A program made the position numbers and the translations under genes. A DNA stretch of 64,000 nt from Anaeramoeba ignava BMAN. Its lineage: Eukaryota > Protista > Anaeramoebae. A model generated the notes under the pieces. That model was not told the origin of the DNA. It saw nothing but the letters and a program-made list of their open reading frames with translations, and ran no database searches. The DNA is taken from contig JAPDFW010000134.1 of NCBI GenBank assembly GCA_028826165.1, positions 62,001 to 126,000 of the forward strand. The letters are read 5' to 3'. This document shows, piece by piece, positions 25,529 through 64,000 of this stretch (positions are counted from its first letter, which is position 1; every line of letters begins with the position of its first letter).

Positions 25529-27168
25529 TTATTGATTTCGTTTTGTTTTCTTTGTTTTGAAAATCTTAATAACATAAATCATCCAAAAAAGAATAACAAA
25601 AATTCCTAAACAAGTTTGAATATAAAAAATTTTCATAAAAGAATAATTTAAAGTTCCCATACAAAAACCTCCCCAAAGATAAGAAAGCATTAAAATCAAA
25701 TAAAAAAATCCATAATCAAAACTAAACATTCTTCCAACAAAATGACCAGGAGGAGTAATTTGGATTAAAATTGTGCTCCAAACCCAAAGTAATCCAATTC
25801 CAAAAGTTCGAACAAAATTTGAAACTAAAAAAACTTCAAAATTTTCAAAATAAACTCCAACTCCAATAAAAATTGTACCGAATAAAAAGATTAAAAACCC
25901 AATAAATATTGTTAACCATCTACTTTTGAAGGTATCTTTTGCAAATCTTTGACCAACAACTTGAATTAAAAAAAAATTAATTTAAAAAAAAAAAGTGGAA
26001 CAAATTAAAAAATGTTTTTCTTCTTGATTAAATCGAATTAATTATTACTTGGCCCAATTAATGTTCCTAATCCTTCTGTTGCATACATTATGCCAAGACT
26101 GATTCCTACTTTTCCTTTTATTTGGAAATATTTTTCAACAATTGAAACCATTGTAACATCAACTGCTCCCCAAACTAAAGCACCTGTTGTTTTAACAATT
26201 ACCATAAACAAAACTTGTGGATTTTTCTTTAGAAATACTAATCCACCTTTAAAATTTGTGTTAAGAGGCTCTTCTTGTTTTTCTTCTTTTAAATTAGATT
26301 TTAAAAGAGCATTTTCATCATTAATATCATCATCGCTTGAATTTGATATTGTTTGAATATCCTCTTTGTTTGAATCCTCACTTTTTTGTTCTGTTTGTTT
26401 CTTATCAGTAATTTCTTTTGAATCACTTTTTTGTAAAGAACTTGTCAATTTTGTAAATTTCCAACTTATTATAATACAAGTTGCAGAAATGATATAAGAA
26501 ATTGAATCGATAATATAAGCAGGAGTTAATCCAGTAACACTTGTAACAACACCACCAATACTACCTCCAATAAAAAACATTGTACTCCAAGTTGTTGCAT
26601 CAAGTGCTAAATCAATTAAAAAATTCATTTAAAAAATCCAATTAAAAAATTCCTTTTAAAAAATCCTTTACTATTTGCTTCTACTATTTGTTTTGCATTT
26701 ACAACAAATGATATTAATCCTGTTCTTGCTGGTGTAAAAAAAGAACTTATTGAAAATTGTATAAAAACAATCGAGAATAAAAACCATTCAATTTTAACAT
26801 ATTCAACAACAATAAAAACAAGAACAACACAAGCACGAATTAAATCACTCAAAATCATAACAATATTTTTATTAAATTTATCAGCAACCTAAATAAAAAT
26901 AAAATCAAATTTTTTCTTCAATTATTTTTCAATTATTCTTCAATTATTTTAGACTCACTGGCCCAACTATTGGAATTAAAACAAAAGAAGGTAATGTTTT
27001 TGCTACAAATAAAATGCTTAACATCAATCCAGATTTATTAATATTTTGACACATTGTTATTGTTGCAATTTGATTAAACCAATCTCCAAGTAAAGATAAT
27101 GTTAATCCAAACCAAAGCCAGAAATATTTTTTATTCTCTTTAATTAAATTCAAATATCCACTTCCCAT
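25529..27168 (-). CDS. Major facilitator superfamily transporter, bacterial DHA3/MefA-like
   Basis: Exons 27168-26959, 26888-26672, 26606-26049 and 25959-25529 join in frame. LWFGLTLSLLGDWFNQIA, motif A-like GPVADKFNKNIVMILSDLIRA, FFTPAR, GRMFSFDYG; many hydrophobic helices. Confidence 0.88.
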
Positions 27169-27254
27169 TAATTTAAAATTAAAATGAAAAAATGAAAAAA
27201 AATGATCTAAAGAGAATTTTTTTTTTCAGAGGGATTAATCATAATTAACAAAAA

Positions 27255-29705
27255 AAATCAAAATCAAATTTAACATTTAATTTATAAATTAATTTAAAAT
27301 TATAACTTAATGTTTAATTTTATTATTAAAATAATAATTTATTGTTTTAGATTTAAATATTTTATTATTTCAATATTTAACAAAAATATAAAAATTGAGA
27401 ATAGATTTAATTTAATATTTAATTTATAAATTAATTTAAAAATATAATTTAATATTTAATTTTATGTTTAAAATAATAATTTACTGTTTTAGAGATTTAA
27501 ATATTTTTATTATTTCAATATTTAACAAATAAATATAAAAATGAGAATAGATTTAATTTAATATTTAATTTATAAATTAATTTAGAAATATAATTTAATA
27601 TTTAATTTTATTATTAAAATAATAATTTATTGTTTTAAATTTAAATATTTTATTATTTCAATATTTAACATATAAATATAAAAATTGAGAATAGATTTAA
27701 TTTAATATTTAATTAATAAATTAATTTAAAAATATAATTTAATATTTAATTTTATTATTAAAAATAATAATTTAATGTTTTAGAATTAAATATTTTATTA
27801 TTTAAATATTTAACAAATAAATATAAAAAATGGGAATAGATTTAATTTAATATTTAATTAATAAATTAATTTAAAAATATAATTTAATATTTAATTTTAT
27901 TATTAAAATTATAATTTATTGTTTTTAGATTTAAATATTTTATTATTTCAATATTAAACATATAAATATCAAAATTGAGAATAGATTTAATTTAATATTT
28001 AATTTATAAATTAATTTAGAAATATAATTTAATATTTAGTTTTATGTTTAAAATAATAATTTAATGTTTTTAGATTTAAAATATTTTATTATTTAAATAT
28101 TAAAACATATAAATATAAAAATTGAAAATAGATTTAATTTAATATTTGATTTATAAATTAATTTAGAAATATAATTTAATATTTAATTTTATGTTTAAAA
28201 TAATAATTTAATGTTTTAAATTTAAATATTTTATTATTTAAATATTTAACAAATAAATATAAAAATAAGAATAGATTTAATTTAATATTTAATTTATAAA
28301 TTAATTTAAAAATATAATTTAATATTTAATTTTATGTTTAAAATAATAATTTACTGTTTTATATTTAAATATTTTATTATTTCAATATTTAACATATAAA
28401 TATAAAAATTGAAAATAAGTTTAATTTAATATTTAATTTATAAATTAATTTAAAAATATAATTTAATATTTAATTTTATTATTAAAATAATAATTTAATG
28501 TTTTAGATTTAAATATTTTATTATTTCAATATTTAACATATAAATATAAAAATAAGAATAGATTTAATTTAATATTTAATTTATAAATCAATTTAAAAAT
28601 ATAATTTAATATTTAATTTTATTATTAAAATAATAATTTAATGTTTTTAGAATTAAATATTTTATTATTTAAATATTTAACATATAAATATAAAAATTGA
28701 AAATAAGTTTAATTTAATATTTAATTTATAAATTAATTTAAAAATATAATTTAATATTTAATTTTATTATTAAAATAATAATTTACTGTTTTAGATTTAA
28801 ATATTTTTATTATTTCAATATTTAACATAAAAATAAAAATTGAAAATAGATTTAATTTAATATTTAATTTATAAATTAATTTAAAAATATAATTTAATAT
28901 TTAATTTTATTATTAAAATAATAATTTAATGTTTTAAATTTAAATATTTTTATTATTTAAATATTAAACAAAAAATATAAAAATAAGAATAGATTTAATT
29001 TAATATTTAATTTATAAATTAATTTAAAATTATAATTTAATATTTAATTTTATGTTTAAAATAATAATTTACTGTTTTAAATTTAAATATTTTATTATTT
29101 AAATATTTAACATAAAAATATAAAAATAAGAATAGATTTAATTTAATATTTAATTTATAAATTAATTTAGAAATATGATTTAATATTTAATTTTATTATT
29201 AAAATAATAATTTAATGTTTTTAGATTTAAATATTTTATTATTTCAATATTTAACATATAAATATAAAAATAAAAATAGATTTGATTTAATATTTAATTT
29301 ATAAATTAATTTAAAAATATAATTTAATATTTAATTTTATGTTTAAAATAATAATTTAATGTTTTAGATTTAATTATTTTATTATTTAAATATTTAACAT
29401 AAAATATAAAAATAAGAATAGATTTAATTTAATATTTAATTTATAAATTAATTTAAAAATATAATTTAATATTTAATTTTATGTTTAAAATAATAATTTA
29501 CTGTTTTAGATTTAAATATTTTATTATTTAAATATTTAACAAATAAATATAAAAATAAGAATAGATTTAATTTAATATTTAATTTATAAATTAATTTAAA
29601 AATATAATTTAATATTTAATTTTATGTTTAAAATAATAATTTACTGTTTTAGATTTAAATATTTTATTATTTCAATATTTAACATATAAATATAAAAATT
29701 GAAAA
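27255..29705. repeat. Satellite array A: ~17 tandem copies of a ~144-bp AT-rich unit
   Basis: The marker AATAG/AATAAG recurs at about 27400, 27546, 27690, 27835, 27980, 28127, 28270, 28413, 28557, 28702, 28845, 28988, 29131, 29275, 29417, 29560 and 29703; mean period ~144 bp. Confidence 0.92.
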
Positions 29706-29920
29706 TAGAAATTAATAATAATTAAATTTAAATTCTTTATTTTCACATAAATTAGAAAAGAAATCAATTAAAATTTATTATTAAAAATTATTCATTTCTT
29801 TTTTTATTTTAATTAAAATATTTTATTAATTTTATTTAATTATTGGGAATTATTTTATATTATTTTAAATAAAGAAAAGTTAATAAAATATATTTTTATA
29901 TAATTTTTTATTATTAATGA
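29703..29920 (+). repeat. ~215-bp spacer following array A, duplicated at 34562-34778
   Basis: AATAGAAATTAATAATAATTAAATTTAAATTCTTTATTTTCACATAAATTAGAAAAGAAATCAA...TTATTGGGAAT... is near-identical at both sites. Confidence 0.88.
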
Positions 29921-29970
29921 TTTAATATTATTTATTTCAAAAAAGAAAAAAAGAAATAAAAATTTTTTTT

Positions 29971-30018
29971 TAATTTTTTCATTTTTTCATTTTTTTTATT
30001 TTTAAATTTTTAAATAAA
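29971..30018 (+). promoter_or_regulatory. Example of the recurrent T-rich TCATTTT initiator-like leader upstream of start codons
   Basis: The same motif lies within ~80 bp upstream of ATG at 8746, 10997, 18351, 21617, 35290, 51353, 56286 and 58194. On the minus strand it precedes 27168, 40233, 45678, 47763, 50997, 61831 and 63792. Confidence 0.55.
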
Positions 30019-31491
30019 ATGGAAACTTATTTAAATTTAGAAAAACTTTCAAATGATTTAAAAAATTTATTTCAAAATCAAAATCAAAAAGAAAATCAAA
30101 ATGAAAGTTATTTTGATTTTGAAATAATTTGTGAACAAAATCAAACTTCATTTAAAACTCATAAATCAATTCTTTCTTCAAGAAGTCAATATTTTAAATC
30201 TCTTTTTAAATCTAAAATGAAAGAATATCAAGAAAATAAAATGATTCTAAAAGATGTTTCAAGTTCAGTTTTATTTTCAATTTTGAATTATTTTTATTCA
30301 GGAAAAATTGAAATTAATTTAGAAAATGCAATTCAAATTTTAATTTTTTCATCAAAATATTTAATTGATGAATTAATTGAAATTTGTTTAAATTTTATCA
30401 AAAACAATTTACAATTTGAAACTATTGTTGATATTCTTAAACTATCTGAATCAATGAACTTAAATCAATTATTGGATTTTTCTTATCAATTTATTTTTGA
30501 AAATTTTAAAGAATTTATCAAAACTTCATTTTTTCTTGAACTTGAAGAAAATCATTTAAATTCAATATTATCAAATGATGAAATTCTAATAAATGAATTT
30601 GAGCTTTTCCAATCAATAATAAAATGGGGAAAACATAAATTAAATATTAATCAAGAAAAAGAAAATCAAAAACTTGAAAAAGAAGAAAAAGAAAAAATTC
30701 AAGATCAAATTTCCAATATTATTGATAAAATCAGATTTATTGATTTTTCAAAACAAGAACTTAAAGATACTTTGAAAGAAGATTTAATTCCAAATCAAAT
30801 TTCACAAAAATTAATTCATTTCCAAAAACTTCAAAATGAAAATGATAATAAAGAACTAAATGAATTTATTGAAAAAGAAAATTCATTAATTTTCAATTCA
30901 AATTTTCAATTCAAATCAAACATTATTTCAGAAAAAAAACATGTTAAGAAATTAAAAAAATGGATAAATGATGATGAATTCTTTTCTAAAATGAAATTAG
31001 GATTTTCAGCAACAAGAGATGGATTTAAAGCTAAAAAATGGCATTCAATTTGTGATAATAAAGGAAAAACATTAGTTATTATCAAAACAAAAGATAATTT
31101 TATTTTTGGAGGATTTACTCAAGTTGGATTTACAACTAATAAATCAAAATGGAGTAGAAAAGATCGAAAACATAAAGATGGATATATTCGAGATATAAAT
31201 GCATTTATTTTTTCATTAAGAAATGATAAACATAATAGAAAACCAGAGAAATTTACAATTAAAAAAGTACAAGCAGAAAATGCAATTTGGTATGATTTAA
31301 ACTGTGGACCAATTTTTGGAAGTGGAAATGATTTTTTTCTACAAAATAATTTACATTTTGGTTATTCAAATTTTGGTCATAGTTACAAACTACCTAATGG
31401 AATTAAAGAAGGAACAAATGAAGCTAAAAGTTATTTAGCTGGTTCTTATGATAAATGGAAAGTTGATGAACTTGAAACTTTTTTCATTTAA
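30019..31491 (+). CDS. BTB-BACK-TLDc domain protein, intronless
   Basis: BTB FKTHKSILSSRSQYFKSLF; BACK NEFELFQSIIKWG; TLDc FSATRDGF..WHSICDNKGKTLVIIKT..IFGGFT..GPIFG..YLAGS..WKVDELETF. Confidence 0.92.
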   Translation: METYLNLEKLSNDLKNLFQNQNQKENQNESYFDFEIICEQNQTSFKTHKSILSSRSQYFKSLFKSKMKEYQENKMILKDVSSSVLFSILNYFYSGKIEINLENAIQILIFSSKYLIDELIEICLNFIKNNLQFETIVDILKLSESMNLNQLLDFSYQFIFENFKEFIKTSFFLELEENHLNSILSNDEILINEFELFQSIIKWGKHKLNINQEKENQKLEKEEKEKIQDQISNIIDKIRFIDFSKQELKDTLKEDLIPNQISQKLIHFQKLQNENDNKELNEFIEKENSLIFNSNFQFKSNIISEKKHVKKLKKWINDDEFFSKMKLGFSATRDGFKAKKWHSICDNKGKTLVIIKTKDNFIFGGFTQVGFTTNKSKWSRKDRKHKDGYIRDINAFIFSLRNDKHNRKPEKFTIKKVQAENAIWYDLNCGPIFGSGNDFFLQNNLHFGYSNFGHSYKLPNGIKEGTNEAKSYLAGSYDKWKVDELETFFI

Positions 31492-31589
31492 ACTTTCTCA
31501 ATAAAATTTAAAATTCGATTTTGTTTTTGATTTTGATTTTGATTAATTTTTTTTTGATTTTTTGGATTTGGAAAAAAAAGAAGAAAATT

Positions 31590-33771
31590 TTAAAAATGAA
31601 GGTGTTTGTTAACAATGCAAAATGCTCCAACCAAAAAGATAAATCCTAAAACAAGAAACAATACCGAAATCGTAACTATACTTTTTGAAGTAGAATTATC
31701 AGTTGTTAATGATCCAGATTGTGAAGACGATAAACTACTTTCTCCACAACTAAGATAACTATTACAAGCAGAAACTTGAACGAAATAATCTTCATCATCA
31801 TATTGTGTATTAAAAGAAGTAGATGTTCCATTCACAAAAAATGTGCCTGAATCCATTCCTGAACTTGATTGAAAACTAATTGAGTAAAAAAATGGATTAT
31901 TAACACAATTAATTGGAATGAGCCAACTACATGAAATTGATAAAGGATGACTTGAACATTGTAGTAAATAAACTGGTCCAAATATTGTATCTATTGTTGT
32001 TGAAAATAATGCTCCCATATCATCTCCTAAGCATGCTAATGTTCTACAAGCATAAATTGCAAAATAATAAGTTGTTCCACAATCTAATGAAGACATTTCA
32101 AATGAAGTTGTTGTGTTATTAACTGATATATATGTAATACTTAATCCATCTTCTTGATAATAAGTAATCAAATAATGATCAAGTTCTGGAACTTCTCCAT
32201 CCATTGTAACATTTGGTGGATTCCAAGTAACATTGATTGATTCATTTGTTGGAGCAAAAGTTAAATTTTGAACAACAGGAATTTTCGTTATTAAATCAGT
32301 TTGTAAAGATGGAGCTCCACATAATTTTGAATTAGGTTCACAAGCTTGAATTATTATTGAATAATTTGCATTTCCAGTTATATTTGGATAAGATGAATTG
32401 AATATTTGATAAGAAATATTTCCTGGAAACCGAGTTGGTTCTTCCATAATTTGCCATCCAATTCCATAGTCTATTCGATGCTCAAGTGGAAATGGATAAT
32501 CGGTTTCATTCCAATAACATTCAAATGAAGAATAAAGTGAAGTACAATTTATTAAATCAATTGCTGGTGGAATCATTGCATAAACAAATGCTTGATTTGA
32601 GAATGTAACTCCCCAAACTCCAATAATCCCATAAATTGATACACTTACATATTCAGCTGTTTGAGTGATATCATAATAAAATCTTCTATTCCATTGATCT
32701 GAATAATATTGGAAAAAATACAAGTCTGTTAACTTTGATCCAACAGCAATAAAATCACCTGAAACTGAAACGGATAAACCAAAATAAATTTCTGCTCTTA
32801 ATCCGGAATTTTGAATTTTGATTTTGAATTTGATCTTGATTTTGATTTTGATTTTGATTTTGATTTTGATTTTGATTTTGATTTTGATTTTGATTTTGAT
32901 TTTGATTTTGATTTTGATTTTGATTTTGATTTTGATTTTGATTTTGATTTTGATTTTCTAATTCTTCTCTTAAATAACTGTTAAAACTAAGTACTTCCTC
33001 CAAAGTCCAATTTCCTTCAGAATACCGATAAACAAACGCAGCATCAAACTCAACTTCTCCAATAAGAACAACATCTCCTGAAGCTGCAACATCATTCCCC
33101 AAATATCCATAAGGATAATCAGAAAAATTTTGTTCAAGAAACCAATTAGATCCATTATATCTGTAAATAAATGCTTGTGAAGAATCGTTTGCTCCAATAA
33201 CAATAACATCTCCTGAAACTGCAACAGCATTTCCATATCCATTTAAACTTTCTGAAAAATTTTCTTCAAGATTCCAATATGATCCATTATATCTGTAAAT
33301 AAATGCTTGATTTGAACCATAAGCTCCGATAACAATAACCTCTTCATCAACTGAAACCGTAAATCCATATCCATTCAAACCTTCTGAAAAATTCTCTTCA
33401 AGATTCCAATATGATCCATTATATCTGTAAACGAATACTTCTTGTGATTCATTTGAACCAACAACAATAACATTTCCTGAAATTGATGAACTAAATCCAA
33501 ATTTCGCACTTGGTTCACTTAATACTTGTTCTAAAACAAAAGTTGATCCATTGCATCTGTAGATAAAAACTTGCATTGTAAATGAATCTCCAACTATAAT
33601 TACATCTTTGAAAACTGAAGAACTTCTTCCATAATCTTGAGTTGATGGTTCTGTAAGTATATCTAATTGTGTAAAAGTTCCTGGAATAGTTTCTAATAAT
33701 TTTGTTGATACTTTTCCAATTTGTGTTGTTAAAATTATTAAAAGGATTAAAAAGAAACAAGTTTTGTTCAT
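31590..33771 (-). CDS. Type I surface protein: signal peptide, FG-GAP-like beta-propeller repeats, FN3 domains, TM helix; split at a (CAAAAT)n tract by a frameshift or an intron
   Basis: ORFs 33771-32755 and 32723-31590 form one gene: the repeat FG.SV.VSGDVIVIGA...AFIYRYNGS.W.LE continues in the other frame as EIYFGLSVSVSGDFIAVG. FN3 motifs INVTWNPP..YLITY..L.CGTTYYFAIYAC. C-terminal hydrophobic helix. Confidence 0.8.
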
Positions 33772-33949
33772 TTTTTTTTTGCTTTCTTTTAAAACAAAGA
33801 AGAAACAAAAAACAAAATTTTAAATTAGTTTTTGATTTGTTTTGGATTAGTTTTGGATTTGTTTTGGATTTGTTTAAAATTACAAATTAAAGTTGAAGAA
33901 ACAAAAAGAAAAAAAAGGAGAAAAAAAATGAGAAAAAAATGATCTTGTC

Positions 33950-34028
33950 AATTTTTTCATTTTTTCCATTTTTTTTCTTTTTAAATTTTTTAAATAAAAT
34001 GGAAACTTATTTAAATTTAAAAAATTAA
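33950..34028 (+). pseudogene. Truncated 5' remnant (leader plus METYLNLKN*) of a BTB-TLDc paralogue
   Basis: About 70 bp match 29971-30039 (TTTTAAATAAAATGGAAACTTATTTAAATTTA); the sequence then runs into satellite A'. Confidence 0.75.
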
Positions 34029-34029
34029 A

Positions 34030-34565
34030 ATCAAATTAAAATCAAATTTAATATTTAATTTATAAATTAATTTAAAAATATAATTTAATATTTAATTTTA
34101 TTATTAAAATAATAATTTATTGTTTTAGATTTAAATTGAAAATAAGTTAAATTTAATATTTAATTTATAAATTAATTTAAAAATATAATTTAATATTTAA
34201 TTTTATTATTAAAATAATAATTTATTGTTTTAGATTTAAATATTTTATTATTTAAATATTTAACATAAAAATATAAAAATTGAAAATAAGTTAAATTTAA
34301 TATTTAATTTATAAATTAATTTAAAAATATAATTTAATATTTATTTTTATTATTAAAAAATAATAATTTATTGTTTTAGATTTAAATATTTTATTATTTA
34401 AATATATAAAAATTGAAAATAAGTTAAATTTAATATTTAATTTATAAATTAATTTAAAAATATAATTTAATATTTAATTTTATTATTAAAATAATAATTT
34501 AATGTTTTAGAATTAAATATTTTATTATTTTAAATATTAAACATAAAAATATAAAAATTGAAAAT
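34030..34565. repeat. Satellite array A': ~4 copies of the same ~144-bp unit, two internally deleted
   Basis: Same unit as 27255-29705, with markers at 34141, 34285, 34418 and 34562. Same 5' boundary AAAATCAAATTTAA. Confidence 0.88.
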
Positions 34566-34694
34566 AGAAATTAATAATAATTAAATTTAAATTCTTTATT
34601 TTCACATAAATTAGAAAAGAAATCAAATAAAATTTATTATTAAAAATTATTCATTTCTTTTTTATTTTAATTAAAATATTTTATTAATTTTATT

Positions 34695-35242
34695 TAATTA
34701 TTGGGAATAATTTTATATTATTTTAAATAAATAAAAAGTTAATAAAATATATTTTTATATAATTTTTATTATTAATTATTTAATAATATTAATTTAAATT
34801 TTGAAATAAAATAATTAAAAAATTTTATTAAATTTATTTAAATTTTGGGAATAATTTTATATTATTTTAAATAAATAAAAGTTAATAAAATACATTTTTA
34901 TATAATTTTTATTATTAATTATTTAATAATATTAATTTAAATTTTGAAATAAAATAATTAAAAATTTTATTAAATTTATTAAATTATTGGGAATAATTTT
35001 ATATTATTTTAAATAAATAAAAGTTAATAAAATACATTTTTATATAATTTTTTATTATTAATTATTTAATAATATTAATTTAAATTTTGAAATAAAATAA
35101 TTAAAAAATTTTATTAAATTTATTTAAATTATTGGGAATAATTTTATATTATTTTAAATAAATAAAAGTTAATAAAATATATTTTTAAATAATTTTTTAT
35201 TATTAATTATTTAATAATATTAATTTAAATTTTGAAATAAAA
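34695..35242. repeat. Satellite array B: ~4 copies of a different ~143-bp unit derived from the spacer end
   Basis: TTGGGAATAATTTTATATT at 34701, 34845, 34987 and 35132 (periods 144, 142, 145). Confidence 0.88.
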
Positions 35243-35289
35243 ATTTTTTTCATTTTTTAATTTTTTCATTTTTTTCTTTTCAAATAAAA

Positions 35290-37783
35290 ATGAAACAAAC
35301 ATTAAAAACAATTTACAAACCAATAACGAAAATGGAACCAATATATATGGGAGGGAAACTTCTACTTTCCCACGATCAAAACCAACTAATAAGTTCATGT
35401 GGAGAAACAGTAACAATAACAACAATTAAAAGCAGTAAAGTGGAAAAAATAATTTTAGACGATGCCGTGATGAGTATCGCACTGCGACCCGACGACAAGG
35501 AAATTATAACAGCCAATCGACACAACATCCTTGAACGATGGGAGTTGCGTGAGCCAGACTTGGAGAAGAAGGAGGGGAAAAAGAACTGGATAAGCAAGGG
35601 GAAGTGGAAAGGACACGATTCGCCCATCTTGGACATCACATTTGATCCAAGTGGGAGACTATTGGCCTCAGGCTCGGCAGACCAAACAGTGAGGGTGTGG
35701 CATGTAGAGAAACAAATTGCGACCCACAATTTGCGTGGTCATCAGAATTTTGTCAGTAAAGTGATGTTTCATCCCGATCCAAATTCTTTGATACTTTTTT
35801 CGGCTTCGGAAGATTCTAGCTTTAAAATTTGGGATTTGAGAAAGAAAAAATGCATCAAAACCTTCAGCAATCATGTCAACACAGTATCCAATTTTTCCGT
35901 TTCAAATGATTTCAAATTTCTTTATGTTTCCGGTCGAGATAAAATTGTTACAAAAGTTAATCTTCAATCCCTTGAAGTTGTCAAAATTATCCCAATTTTT
36001 GAATCAATTGAAGCCGTTATTTCACTTCCAAATGAAAAATTCATCACTGCTGGCGATAAAGGAAAACTTTCTGTTTGGGATTCAACTAAATCAAAGAAAA
36101 TCAAAGAGCAAAAAATTAGTCAAATTACTCAACAAAATGAAAATGATCCACTTGTTTTGAATGAATATAACAGTTTTGTTTATGCTTTTCTTCGCGACAA
36201 ATTCAATCAAATTGTCGCCGTTACAAATTCGCAGAATATTTTGTTTTTTGATTTGGATTCTTTTGATTTTGAAATGGAAATTGTTGGATTTATTGATGAA
36301 ATTTTGGATGTTAAATATATAAATGAAAATGAATCGGCAGTTGTTTCAAATTCAGAACAAGTGAAGATTTTTGATATCCACAGCAATCATTGTGTTTCAA
36401 CATTATATGGACATACAGATATTGTTTTATCGATGGATATAAGTTATGATAAGAAGAAATTAATTACTGGATCGAAAGATAAAACGATCCGAATTTGGGA
36501 TTTATCAATAAATTCAAATGAAAATATAAATGAAAATATAAATCAAAATCTAAATCAAAATTTAAATCAAAATTCAAATCAAAATCAAAATCAAAATCAA
36601 AATCAAAATCTATCAAAATTCTTTCCAAAAGCCCCGAAATGTTTGGGCACTTGTTCTGGTCATACAGAACCAGTTACTACAGTTGCATTCCCAAATAACT
36701 CAAATTCATTTGCAATAAGTGGAGGAAATGATAAAACAATAAAAATATGGGATTTGGAAAAAATGGAATCCAAAAAAACAATACAAGCACACAAAAAGGA
36801 AATCAACAGCATTGCAATATCACCAAATGATAAACTATTTGCAACATGTTCGCAAGATCGAACAATAAAAATATGGGATTTGGAAAAAATGGAATTAATT
36901 GGAATTTTAGAAGGTCACAGAAGAGGAATTTGGTCCATTGCATTTTCGCCAGTGGACAAAGTAATTGCATCATGTTCTGCAGACGGAACAATCAAGATAT
37001 GGTCGTTGAATAACTTTATGTGTTTGAAAACCTTTGAAGGACATTCTAATTCGGTAACTCGAGTGCGATTTTTAACTCATGGAATGCAAATTCTATCGAC
37101 AAGTTCAGACGGTTTGATCAAAATTTGGTCGATAAAAACCAATGAATGCATTTCCACTTTTGCTGCCATTAATGAAAAGACATGGTGTCTTGATATGAAC
37201 CATGATGAAGAGGAGTTTATTAGTGGCGGTTCAGATTCTTTTTTGATTGTCTGGAAAAATTACACTTTGATTGAAGAAGAAGAAAAACTTAAAAATCAAG
37301 AAATTCAAATCATGAAAGAACAGCAACTTAACAACTTGATGCATCTGCAAAATTATGAGCAAGCCCTTGATATTGCTCTTGATTTGAATTTCCGTTATAA
37401 AGCTCTTGATATTTTTAATCAATTGATTCAATATCAAAATTCTTTATCGAAAGTTGTTTCAAAATTTGATGAAAAAAAACTTGTTCAAGTTCTTAATCTT
37501 GTTGTTGATTGGAATACTAATACAAAAACTGCTTTGATTTCTCAAATAATTTTGAAGGAAATCTTTTAGTTCTTTTTCTCCTGATCATCTTCTTCATTTG
37601 TCTGGAATTAAGGAGATTTTAAAAGCTTTAATTCCTTATTCTGAAAGACATTTTCAAAGAATGGATAAATTACATAGAGAATCTTTTATTATTGATCATA
37701 CTTTATATAGTGTTAAATTAACTAATTTGAAGATTGATGAAGAAAAAACAAATTTATCAATAAATTCAGATCAAGAAATTTAA
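35290..37783 (+). CDS. TBL3: Transducin beta-like 3 / U3 snoRNA-associated protein 13 (WD40 + Utp13 domain), with a +1 frameshift near 37564-37567
   Basis: N-terminal EPIYMGG, WD40 repeats, GHRRGIWS, Utp13 domain DWNTNTK. Removing one T in ATCTTTTAGT gives IFSSFSPDHLL.. in frame with ALIPYSERHFQRMDKL. Confidence 0.9.
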
Positions 37784-59431: not shown

Positions 59432-59640
59432 ATCCAATAATCTTGAACTAGCAAAAAAACCCAAAAAAAAAAATATCCCTTTTTTTGATTTTTTGATTTT
59501 TTCTTTTTCAATCAAAATTCAAATTCAAATTCCCTTCATTTCTTTCATTTTTTTGATGTGGAATTTTTCATAAAAGAAAAAAACAATTTAATTTTAATTT
59601 TGATTTTAATTTTGATTTTAATTTTAATTTGAATTTTAAT

Positions 59641-59944
59641 TTTTGATTTTCATTTTTAAATTTGTTAGTTAATAAATCAAATAAATTTGGATTTGTTTGA
59701 TTTAATTGAAAATAATTAATTCCATTTTGATTTTTAATTTTAATTTTAATTTTAATTTTAATTTTAATTTTAATTTTAATTTTAATTTTAATTTTAATTT
59801 TAATTTTAATTTTAATTTTAATTTTAATTTTGATTTTAATTTTGATTATTAAATTTGTTAATTAATAAATCAAATAAATTTGGATTTGTTTGATTTAATT
59901 GAAAATAATCAATTCCAATTTTAATTTCATTAATGATTTCTTGT
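59641..59944 (-). pseudogene. Two orphan copies of the RCC1-BTB C-terminal coding segment
   Basis: 59943-59836 reads QEIINEIKIGIDYFQLNQTNPNLFDLLINKFNNQN*. ~59725-59641 reads GINYFQLNQTNPNLFDLLTNKFKNENQK. Confidence 0.8.
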
Positions 59945-61831
59945 TTAAAAAATTAAACAATTTTCTTTTTTTTTGTTTTTTTTTCTTTTGAGATTTTCAT
60001 TTTTAAATTTGTTAGTTAATAAATCAAATAAATTTGGATTTGTTTGATTTAATTGAAAATAATCAATTCCTCTTTGAATTTCATTAATTATTTCTTTTGT
60101 AATTTGAATTTCATCTTTAATTTGATTTGAATAAATCCAATATTCAAATATTTGAAATGATTTATTACTTAATTCACTATAATCTGTAACTTTATTAGAA
60201 TTATCTTCAGTTACAGATAAAAACATTCCTCGATATAATTCACTTCTCATTATTAATATTAATTTTGGAAATTTATATTGTTTTTCTTTTCTTTCAATTA
60301 TAAAATCTTTTTCATTTTCATTTAAATAAATTCTTTTCATTGTTTCTTCAATTTTTTCATTTGAATTTATAATTTCTTTAATTTCAGAATATAATTTTGG
60401 ATTTATTATTCTGTTTGAATAAATCATTTCAAATATTTGATTTGATTCTTTAATTGATTTATTTGAAATAATTTCTTGAAGTTTTTCAATTTGATTTTGA
60501 TTTTGATTTAATCTATATTTCAATATTAATTTATGAGCTTCAATTATTTCTCCATTTTTGGTTTTAAATGAAATATTACAAAATTCTTTTCTTCTAAATA
60601 ATTTTATCAAATCTTCTTCAAGATTGGAAAAAGAAGGAGAAGAATAATAAAGAAATGATTTGTAATCTCCACAAGAAATATGATAATTAGAAATATCTTC
60701 ATTAAATCTTAATTTAGGAATTTCAATTTGAATTGGAATTGATTTCGTTTCTGTATCTTCAGTTCCTAATTGGCCAAAATAATTATCTCCAAATCCAATC
60801 AATTTTGATTTGGAAGTTAAAATCAAAGTATGAGCACTTCCACAAGAAAAATCAAGAATATTATTATCATTTTCAAATAAAGATGATTTGATTTCAGTAA
60901 ATTCATAAGTATCTTCATTTTTGCCAAGTCCATTTAATAGATAATCTCCAGTTGAATAAAGTTTTCTTTTTGGATTTTCATTTTCATTTTCAATCAACAT
61001 TATTGAATGACAAGATCCAGACTTAATATCAATTATTTTACCTTTTGGAATATTTTGGATTTGAGTTAGTTCTTGGATTTTTTCCTCTTTTTTTCTTGAT
61101 TCTCCTAATCCAAGTTGACCATAATTATTATCACCACATCCAAATAATTCTTGATTTGAATTTAAAAGAAAAACATGTCTTGAATCATTTCCTGAAAATA
61201 TTTTAGAAACATTTTTCATTATTAAAATTGGTTTTTCTGTTTTTCGTGTTTTAGAATCAAAAAATATTTCTCCAAATTTATTTGAACCAATTCCATAAGT
61301 ATTTTGATTTGAAGTTAATAAGTAAATTGACTTGTATCCACAAACAACATCTTGAATTATTCTATCATTTGTATCTTCAATTAATGATGAAATATTGATG
61401 AATTCATTTGGATTTTCTGGATTAATATATCTTCCTTTGGCAAATACATTTCCTTCTATTGTTAAAATAGCTTCATTCGCATAACCAACAGTTACTTTTT
61501 GAATATTTTCTTCAATTTGGATTTTTTTAGGATTTGGATTTGAATCATTTTCATTTAAATATTCTATTGCTTTTCCATTTTTAAAAAGGAAAATTGTTCC
61601 AAAGAAACTTGATGAAATTTGTTTAATTTGTTTTTCATTTTCATTTTCATTTTCATTTTCATTTTCAATTTCATTTTCATTTTCATTTTCATTTTCATTT
61701 TCATTTTCATTTTCATTTTCATTTTCATTTTCATTTTCAAATTTAAATTGAATTGGTTTTTTTATTTTTTTTGATTCATTTTTGATAAGTTTTGGATTTT
61801 TATTTAAACCAAAAAATAAACAATCATTCAT
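59945..61831 (-). CDS. RCC1-repeat + BTB-like protein with polybasic CaaX tail, intronless
   Basis: RCC1 motifs GDNNYGQLGLG, SCGSAHTLILT, GFGDNYFGQLG; BTB-like IEAHKLILKYRL and ILIMRSELYRGMF. Ends KRKKNKKKENCLIF*. Confidence 0.9.
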   Translation of the reverse strand: MNDCLFFGLNKNPKLIKNESKKIKKPIQFKFENENENENENENENENENENENEIENENENENENEKQIKQISSSFFGTIFLFKNGKAIEYLNENDSNPNPKKIQIEENIQKVTVGYANEAILTIEGNVFAKGRYINPENPNEFINISSLIEDTNDRIIQDVVCGYKSIYLLTSNQNTYGIGSNKFGEIFFDSKTRKTEKPILIMKNVSKIFSGNDSRHVFLLNSNQELFGCGDNNYGQLGLGESRKKEEKIQELTQIQNIPKGKIIDIKSGSCHSIMLIENENENPKRKLYSTGDYLLNGLGKNEDTYEFTEIKSSLFENDNNILDFSCGSAHTLILTSKSKLIGFGDNYFGQLGTEDTETKSIPIQIEIPKLRFNEDISNYHISCGDYKSFLYYSSPSFSNLEEDLIKLFRRKEFCNISFKTKNGEIIEAHKLILKYRLNQNQNQIEKLQEIISNKSIKESNQIFEMIYSNRIINPKLYSEIKEIINSNEKIEETMKRIYLNENEKDFIIERKEKQYKFPKLILIMRSELYRGMFLSVTEDNSNKVTDYSELSNKSFQIFEYWIYSNQIKDEIQITKEIINEIQRGIDYFQLNQTNPNLFDLLTNKFKNENLKRKKNKKKENCLIF

Positions 61832-62037
61832 TTTTGAAAAGAAAAAAAATGAAAAAATGATTTTTGGAATTTTAATTTTAATTTTGATTTTTAATTTTGA
61901 TTTTAATTTTAATTTGAATTTTAATTTTGATTTTAAATTTTAATTTTAATTTTAATTTTAATTTTAATTTTAATTTTAATTTTAATTTTAATTTTGGAAT
62001 TTTAATTTTAATTTTAATTTTGATTTTAATTTTAATT

Positions 62038-63792
62038 TTAATTTTGATTATTAAATTTTTTAATTAATAAATCAAATAAATTTGGTTTTGTTTGATTTAA
62101 TTGAAAATAATCAATTCCTCTTTGAATTTCATTAATTATTTCTTTTGTAATTTGAATTTCATCTTTAATTTGATTTGAATAAATCCAATATTCAAATATT
62201 TGAAATGATTTATTACTTAATTCACTATAATCTGTAACTTTATTAGAAGTATCATTTGTTACAGATAAAAACATTCCTCGATATAATTCACTTCTCATTA
62301 TTAATATTAATTTTGGAAATTTATATTGTTTTTCTTTTCTTTCAATAATAAAATCTTTTTCTTTTTCATTTAAATAAATTCTTTTCATTGTTTCTTCAAT
62401 TTTTTCATTTAAATTTATAATTTCTTTAATTTCAGAATATAATTTTGGATTTATTTTGGAATTATTTGAATAAATCATTTCAAATATTTGATTAGATTCT
62501 TTAATTGATTTTTTTGAAATAATTTCTTGAAGTTTTTCAATTTGATTTTCATTTTCATTTTGATTTAATCTATATTTTAATATTAATTTATGAGCTTCAA
62601 TTATTTCTCCATTTTCGGTTTTAAATGAAATATTACAAAATTCTTTTCTTCTAAATAATTTTATCAAATCTTCTTCAAGATTGGAAAAAGAAGGAGAAGA
62701 ATAATAAAGAAATGATCTTTCATATCCACAAGAAAGATGATAATTAGAAATATCTTCATTAAATCTTAATTTAGGAAGTTCAATTTGAATTGGAATTAAT
62801 TGATATTTTGTATTTCCAGTTCCTAATTGACCATCATCATTATCACCAAATCCAATTAATTTATTATTGGAAGTTAAAATCAAAGTATGAGCATTTCCAC
62901 AAGAAAAATCAAGAATATTATCATCATTTTCAAATAAATATGATTTGATTTCAGTAAATTCATAAGTATTTTGATCTTGGCCAAGTCCATTATATGAGGA
63001 GCATCCACATGAATAAAGTTTTCTTTTTGGATTTTCATTTTCAATCAACATTACTGAATAAGAACAACCACATTTAATATCAATTATTTTACCTTTTGGA
63101 ATATTTTGGATTTTGGTTAATTTTTGGATTATTGTTTCTTTTTTTCTTGATTCTCCTAATCCAAGTTGACCATATTGATTATATCCGCATACAAATAATT
63201 CTTGATTTGAATTTAAAAGAAAAACATGATTTGAAGAATTTCCTGAAAATATTTTAGAAACATTTTTCATTATTAAAATTGGTTTTTGTGTTTTTTCAAG
63301 TGTTTTAGAATCAAAACCAAGTTGACCATATTGATTTGAACCAATTCCATAAGCATTTTGATTTGAAGTTAATAAGTAAAATGAATAAGCACCAGAAACA
63401 ATATCTTGAATTATTCTATCATTTGTATCTTCAATTAATGATGAAATATTGATAAATTCTTTTGGATTATTTGGATTAATATCTTTTCCTTTTGCAAATA
63501 CATTTCCTTCTTTTGTTAAAATAGCTTCATTTTGATAACTAACAGTTACTTTTTGAATATTTTCAATTTGGATTTTTTCAGGATTTTGATTTGAATCGTT
63601 TTGTTTTAAATATTCTATTGCTTTTCCATTTTTAAAAAGGAAAATTATTGAAAATAAACTTGATGAAATTTGTTTAATTTGTTTTTCATTTTCATTTTCA
63701 AATTTAAATTGAATTGGTTTTGTTATTTTATCTTTTTCATTTTTGATAAGTTTTGGATAGTCATTTAAACCAGAAAATAAACAATCATTCAT
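62038..63792 (-). CDS. RCC1-repeat + BTB-like protein, tandem paralogue without CaaX
   Basis: Highly similar to 59945-61831 along its length. Ends KKFNNQN*. Confidence 0.9.
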   Translation of the reverse strand: MNDCLFSGLNDYPKLIKNEKDKITKPIQFKFENENEKQIKQISSSLFSIIFLFKNGKAIEYLKQNDSNQNPEKIQIENIQKVTVSYQNEAILTKEGNVFAKGKDINPNNPKEFINISSLIEDTNDRIIQDIVSGAYSFYLLTSNQNAYGIGSNQYGQLGFDSKTLEKTQKPILIMKNVSKIFSGNSSNHVFLLNSNQELFVCGYNQYGQLGLGESRKKETIIQKLTKIQNIPKGKIIDIKCGCSYSVMLIENENPKRKLYSCGCSSYNGLGQDQNTYEFTEIKSYLFENDDNILDFSCGNAHTLILTSNNKLIGFGDNDDGQLGTGNTKYQLIPIQIELPKLRFNEDISNYHLSCGYERSFLYYSSPSFSNLEEDLIKLFRRKEFCNISFKTENGEIIEAHKLILKYRLNQNENENQIEKLQEIISKKSIKESNQIFEMIYSNNSKINPKLYSEIKEIINLNEKIEETMKRIYLNEKEKDFIIERKEKQYKFPKLILIMRSELYRGMFLSVTNDTSNKVTDYSELSNKSFQIFEYWIYSNQIKDEIQITKEIINEIQRGIDYFQLNQTKPNLFDLLIKKFNNQN

Positions 63793-63869: not shown

Positions 63870-64000
63870 TTAATCCAAAAAATAGCATTCAATTTCTTCC
63901 ACTTCCCAATTTTGAAAAGAACCTGCTAAATAATTTCTTGCTTCATTTGTTCCATAAATTATATCTTTTGGAGTATTATAAGTGAATCCAAAATTAGTGT
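63870..64000 (-). CDS. 3' end of a TLDc-domain gene (partial)
   Basis: Minus strand reads TNFGFTYNTPKDIIYGTNEARNYLAGSFQNWEVEEIECYFLD*, homologous to the C-terminus of 30019-31491. Confidence 0.85.
   Translation of the reverse strand, partial: TNFGFTYNTPKDIIYGTNEARNYLAGSFQNWEVEEIECYFLD

Follow-up and report, generated by a model that had tools for sequence, protein, structure and literature searches.

Non-autonomous Helitrons and Foldback elements are dispersed in genomes, are built of internal tandem repeats and may carry host genes. In Schizosaccharomyces, wtf genes have been duplicated into pre-existing dispersed 5S rDNA sites, and pairs of wtf and wag genes are flanked by direct 5S rDNA copies, for which ectopic conversion or the integration of a circle has been proposed (PMC9562144). 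In Trypanosoma brucei, 70-bp repeats are located upstream of the VSG genes and their role has been shown by genetics (PMC4858185). The euchromatic 1.688 and Rsp-like satellites of Drosophila are spread by interlocus conversion or eccDNA (PMC7403614). Finally, template-switch insertions with local duplications, known as FoSTeS/MMBIR, occur in human constitutional rearrangements (PMC5120786).

The locus compared here with these systems comes from Anaeramoeba ignava, whose genome has an A+T content of 80.65% and whose assembly is built on long reads (PMC11550330). Positions are those of the window, the whole 64-kb stretch of DNA that was analysed (C135:62001-126000), and genome searches were made in the 42.8-Mb, 147-contig assembly. 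The original prediction saw in 27250-35245 a satellite-bracketed candidate for a unit that mobilises or amplifies the genes it carries, and both the order of elements that it noted and their coordinates hold on recheck. As it also stated, the block lies between ordinary genes. The left host flank (27166-27259, minus strand) contains the start codon (ATG 27168) and promoter side of an MFS-like gene, with TTTTTCA motifs upstream and a downstream exon that has a weak MFS_1 match. The right host flank (35243-35292, plus strand) contains the promoter motif and start codon of TBL3/UTP13, the product of which is 100% identical to P0001, an A. ignava transducin beta-like protein with the Utp13 domain PF08625. 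No UTP13 orthologue from another Anaeramoeba species was present among the 120 homologues listed.

What do the satellites of this block accompany elsewhere in the genome? They belong to a module that A. ignava has in no fewer than 135 places, dispersed over at least 48 contigs, and that reads A array, conserved tail T (about 350 bp), BTB-TLDc gene, S and B array. This is the usual order at the 20 fetched loci (8-10-kb stretches chosen by similarity to the window units and given L numbers), where S, a conserved 3' flank of BTB-TLDc genes, normally begins 110-250 bp past the stop codon and where in variants the A array is inverted or B comes immediately before a gene. Candidate sites genome-wide number 664 for A, 176 for S and 327 for B, with 40 candidates scored each time for similarity. 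The junction of A with the tail, taken as a 33-nt pattern, occurs 135 times in the genome and its reversed control not at all; the first 100 occurrences are spread over 48 contigs, with gaps between neighbours of less than 10 kb in only 4 of 52. Of 36 S copies, 18 follow an A-tail junction on the same strand, mostly at 2.2-2.6 kb, as do 20 of 25 copies of the B-end motif, mostly at 3.0-3.7 kb, where about 0.3 would be expected; among these 36 S and 25 B ends, neither was ever seen only on the strand opposite to the junction. The order at the fetched loci, the 135 junctions and the stereotyped same-strand spacing together mean that the satellite-armed BTB-TLDc module is real. The search of the assembly with the unit and the spacer that had been proposed at the outset thus returned sequences that are scattered, closely linked to BTB-TLDc genes and provided with preferred ends. 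The B-end motif was rejected as a count of junctions between B and RCC1-BTB genes, since it also occurs inside B arrays. The best 120 homologues listed for the BTB-TLDc protein of the window are all from A. ignava. No description of these arrays, or of a BTB-TLDc expansion in Anaeramoeba, was found in the literature, and the term BTB is absent from the main text of the genome paper (PMC11550330).

Some copies depart from a single linear arrangement. At L031:983-9970 and L035:4054-9228 two BTB-TLDc genes stand back to back on one common A array, one gene reading from the tail side and the other from the reverse strand of A. At L033:648-3319 and L034:3771-6364 two BTB-TLDc-S-B units point towards one another with about 6 kb of unrelated genes between them, an arrangement that looks like an inverted repeat.

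The module resembles the wtf/5S system in that a large gene family is statistically tied to a dispersed repeat and in that genes lie between direct copies, of A-S-B in the window and of an RCC1-BTB 3' piece at L048. It differs in that the repeats are non-genic, AT-rich satellites forming two unrelated arms, that the cargo is a ubiquitin adaptor and that the pre-existing solo site is a putative one rather than one shown by synteny. With the VSG repeats it shares an AT-rich array upstream of members of a variable family that also have a conserved 3' flank, possibly serving as homology for copying; unlike in the trypanosome, the role of the array is one that we infer, and no expression site or switching is known. 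The Rsp-like satellites are similar as small dispersed arrays with recurrent fixed junctions that arise on microhomology, but the Drosophila arrays are gene-free whereas in A. ignava two different satellites move with a whole gene between them.

Within the window, array A (elsewhere the 5' arm of the module) occupies 27267-29709 on the plus strand and was found by TRF to have 17.0 copies at a period of 143 bp, with units of 142-147 bp and 93% matches, in keeping with the roughly 17 units first counted. The second copy, A', has the four units expected of it (34044-34568, plus strand), two of which are shortened, to 105 and 133 bp. Both open at the same boundary, AAAATCAAATTTAA (27260 and 34038), where an AAAATC microsatellite is joined to the start of the array; the 14 nt of this junction at 27260-27273 (plus strand) recur identically at 34038, where the repeated junction and A' together span 34038-34568. 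Both also run into one spacer (29710-29925 and 34569-34783; 210 identities, 4 mismatches and 3 gaps), and the bracketing copies of array plus spacer are direct repeats of 97-98% identity. The two copies nevertheless differ in unit number, in unit deletions and in several substitutions. The 215-bp spacer is indeed present twice, although it is not a single element: it consists of about 100 bp of S (29710-29810, with a second copy, S', at 34569-34668 that is identical in 99 of 101 columns; both plus strand) followed by the first unit of array B. Array B, which closes the block on the right as predicted, comprises 4.0 units of 143 bp (34669-35242, plus strand, by TRF) and is elsewhere the 3' arm of the module; the single B unit on the left (29811-29940, plus strand) is 91-95% identical to the right-hand units. 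With the spacer resolved into S and one B unit, B is seen to lie on both sides of the insert, as one unit on the left versus four on the right. Both A-S-B copies have a common AAAATC-microsatellite junction on the left and a similar junction between B and a promoter on the right. Satellites A (27267-29709) and B (34669-35242) have an equal 143-bp period without detectable homology; homology between them was considered and rejected, there being no detectable relation in either orientation.

The two arrays appear to have different histories. Across 149 A units from 19 arrays the distance is 0.058 within arrays and 0.055 between them, and the corresponding values for 86 B units (24 arrays) are 0.050 and 0.117 (permutation p < 0.001), these loci having been chosen by similarity to the window units, with a possible bias as a result. 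The B units of the window are 91-97% identical to one another and at most 90% identical to those of any other fetched locus. Judged by such distances, A behaves as if it were one genome-wide pool, maintained by exchange between loci or left by the recent spread of a mixed array, and B would seem to evolve locally. This difference between a shared A pool and locus-specific B arrays lends itself to direct testing with reads.

The feature that sets this locus apart is the fusion of A to S (29682-29716, plus strand). The 35-nt pattern that spans it has two exact matches in the genome, both in the window; elsewhere S and B are found 3' of the BTB-TLDc gene, and here both follow directly after A. 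As the fusion exists only twice, both times here, the bracketing direct repeat stems from the duplication, at this locus, of a remnant without a gene. The fusion sits on a short motif that is common to the tail of the A unit and the normal 3' flank of the gene, as expected if the tail and gene had been deleted by recombination, and an internal deletion of this kind would account for it. The idea that the A-spacer-bracketed block is itself the mobile or amplifying unit is not sustained, because the A-S junction is confined to this locus and S and B elsewhere follow the gene. The circularly permuted order that had been pointed out is there to be seen but is not diagnostic of a circle, as it follows from any duplication around an insert; integration of a circle is possible. 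The window is best read as a reshuffle that happened once, with a module remnant that lacks its gene being duplicated around a copied gene pair, and it bears no sign of a transposon. The locus is a single rearrangement, and the general mechanism has precedents.

The first member of the gene pair is, as stated in the original prediction, an intronless BTB-TLDc gene behind a leader. The promoter and leader occupy 29941-30018 (plus strand), the 5' part being similar to the junction between B and UTP13, and the reading frame (30019-31491, plus strand, METY type) encodes 490 aa with the Pfam domains BTB, BACK and TLD. The leader copies are real, but the leader is less specific an element than had been supposed, as much of it is a TTTTTCA-type motif that precedes many unrelated ATGs. 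S is absent after the stop codon of this gene, which has lost its normal S-B 3' flank. The identity to paralogues reaches 88% over the first 290 residues of the protein but no more than 71% over the TLDc half, and the best-matching paralogues are not the same for the two halves. Many paralogues have an interruption of 1.6-2 kb before the last TLDc exon (L031:6928-9083, L035:6258-8245, L044:4951-6568) that is absent from the window gene.

The inverted neighbour (33771-31590, minus strand) encodes a single-pass surface protein with an FG-GAP propeller and FN3 domains by Pfam; its identity and orientation were correctly called, but its frame is broken as assembled. A one-base frame change follows a QN-coding microsatellite (32808-32957, within the region 32790-32957). 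In the paralogue P0241 the QN run is translated in frame, so that the frame change points to a pseudogene or to an assembly indel; an intron at the microsatellite was ruled out, as a paralogue translates it. Beyond this gene the predicted duplication of the leader and the METYLNL codons is borne out: 33950-34024 aligns with the start of the BTB-TLDc gene with 71 identities, 2 mismatches and 2 gaps, and the stump closes in a stop codon (33950-34028, plus strand). The best genomic match of leader and stump is the window gene's own start, by a small margin. Simple inheritance of the stump from C133, another contig, was ruled out, as the C133 match to the second leader ends before the stump ATG.

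C133 was compared by match coordinates. The BTB-TLDc gene, the intergenic stretch and the 3' half of the FG-GAP gene match C133:46697-49456 in one piece at 88%, the match extends across the FG-GAP gene, and C133:52158-54705 holds a partial second copy of the pair that is more distant. The pair is a segmental duplicate shared with C133, and the FG-GAP gene came in this duplicate rather than as the cargo of a bracketed unit. Since the pair is 88% identical to C133 and the repeats around it are 97-98% identical to each other, either C133 is no fresh donor, some other copy having served, or the events differ in age. A 2.7-kb gap in the C133 match upstream of its BTB-TLDc gene may hold arrays.

The ends of the arrays indicate where modules meet host sequence. 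In about 30 arrays the A 5' ends lie between about -29 and +30 relative to the start of the unit, and about eight of these ends follow an RCC1-BTB stop codon, with common ancestry among them. Of 17 B ends, 10 reach the promoter motif TTTTTCATTTTT within 60 nt, against an AT-rich background of 1.3%; six of the ten precede BTB-TLDc paralogues and others unrelated genes such as UTP13, although this abutment could instead reflect selection in short intergenic regions. At L048:3247-8043 and L044:3861-4487 the B array gives way, at an identical point, to a truncated RCC1-BTB 3' end, and the join sits on a motif that this end shares with the B unit. In L048 an RCC1-BTB 3' piece is present at both ends of the module, the downstream piece being a direct repeat of part of the RCC1-BTB gene that precedes A, which is what homology-directed insertion into the RCC1-BTB family would produce. 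The window junctions also lie on microhomologies, namely the AAAATC microsatellite and the core-promoter motif, although microhomology comes cheaply in DNA of more than 90% AT.

A single account, repeat-assisted ectopic copying with template switching, probably embraces the landing of the module, the solo A-S-B and the duplication of A-S-B around the inserted pair. The module would spread at the DNA level, without a transposase, by ectopic recombination through its arrays and through short homologies to host sequence, such as RCC1-BTB 3' ends, promoter motifs and the AAAATC microsatellite. At this locus a module would have landed between the divergent MFS and UTP13 promoters, after which the tail and gene would have been deleted through the motif common to the A tail and the 3' flank to leave a solo A-S-B. 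Repair synthesis may then have copied A-S-B as far as the promoter motif, where it would have changed template to a BTB-TLDc/FG-GAP pair like that of C133; it would next have acquired a second gene start, before coming back to the beginning of A at the AAAATC microsatellite. The outcome would be A-S-B duplicated around the insert, for which an equivalent circle would be an alternative route, and later drift in array length could have produced the 17 versus 4 units of A and the 1 versus 4 units of B. The arrival of the pair and the duplication of A-S-B may have been separate events. This ectopic copying would resemble FoSTeS/MMBIR in the insertion of a fragment from elsewhere with duplication of the site, junction microhomology and short templated pieces, and would differ from it in its kilobase scale and its satellite arms. 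A bolder proposal, which we put forward tentatively and consider doubtful as a whole, is that A and B serve as dedicated arms for recombination. They would belong to a transposase-free system for copying and reshuffling variable BTB-TLDc adaptor genes, with docking at promoter motifs and RCC1-BTB ends and with solo A-S-B remnants such as this one as landing pads that also admit other variable families, FG-GAP receptors among them. The locus as read here points to a concrete way in which a free-living protist could assemble large, variable ubiquitin-adaptor repertoires without a transposase, and the window keeps intermediates that can still be read: an internal deletion, a duplicated remnant and a captured neighbour gene.

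Could the permutation be literal? The block might represent about 1.3 units of a tandem array (A-S-B-gene-FG-GAP-stump) that is shared with C133 and was moved as a circle or segmental copy. The two C133 copies of the pair are about 6.45 kb apart, and the distance of about 2.7 kb there from the start of the upstream FG-GAP gene to the start of the BTB-TLDc gene is close to the 2.76 kb of A-S-B-leader here; the A-S junction pattern is nevertheless absent from C133 even with one mismatch allowed, C133 is not among the scored matches of A, S or B (40 candidates scored each), and its match to the second leader ends before the METYLNL codons, all of which make a shared tandem unit rather unlikely. 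It is also decidedly unlikely that A and B mark the ends of a gene-capturing, non-autonomous transposon (Helitron-, Foldback- or Crypton-like) with its enzyme encoded elsewhere. Such an element would explain why copies of unvarying internal order are scattered in either orientation, as well as the narrow range of A 5' ends described above, but A and B are unrelated in either orientation, the ends are ragged, and arrays are also found inverted or upstream of a gene. The Helitron-like capture that had been suggested receives no backing, as no Helitron or terminal-inverted-repeat hallmarks were found in the block or in the module ends tested, so that the ends that define Helitrons and Foldback elements set these apart from A. 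ignava. CTAG does not occur in 27250-35245, and with regard to the Helitron 3' signature of CTRR and a GC-rich hairpin, CTRR is near only 1 of 17 B ends, and the GC content of the ends is 2-15%. A genome search for a RepHel partner (Helitron_like_N, PF14214) was without a match, as was its positive control. A compared with reverse-complemented B scores no better than shuffles, and the brackets of the window are direct repeats. In the three modules with both ends, a small sample with ragged ends, the longest word shared by the two outer flanks equals the shuffled expectation, giving no sign of a target-site duplication. The block does not fit an LTR-like element either, as the A-S junction is found only at the window locus and the internal reading frames are BTB-TLDc and FG-GAP/FN3.

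The arrays might alternatively act chiefly in cis, on the chromatin or transcription of BTB-TLDc genes, and be carried along by ordinary duplications without promoting any copying themselves. The length of a nucleosome core is close to 143 bp, a period that both arrays have in spite of lacking detectable homology, and A or B is often directly upstream of a promoter motif. A purely regulatory role is very improbable given that the A units form one genome-wide pool, which speaks for exchange between loci or recent spread, and that the arrays sit at module junctions; cis-acting and copying roles are compatible with each other. That the direct repeat is an assembly artefact is, on indirect grounds, very unlikely, even if the repeats are very AT-rich and the nearby one-base frameshift may be an assembly error: the two copies diverge in unit number, unit deletions and several substitutions, the assembly is a long-read one (PMC11550330), and 68% of sampled words from the gene pair are present in an indexed run that may come from the very sample assembled.

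At its far end the window returns to the same gene families. The further TLDc gene that had been placed there is represented by a TLDc C-terminus at 63870-64000. At 59500-60100 and 59945-63792 lie two tandem RCC1-BTB genes and then stacked RCC1-BTB 3'-end fragments, with the TLDc C-terminus directly upstream.
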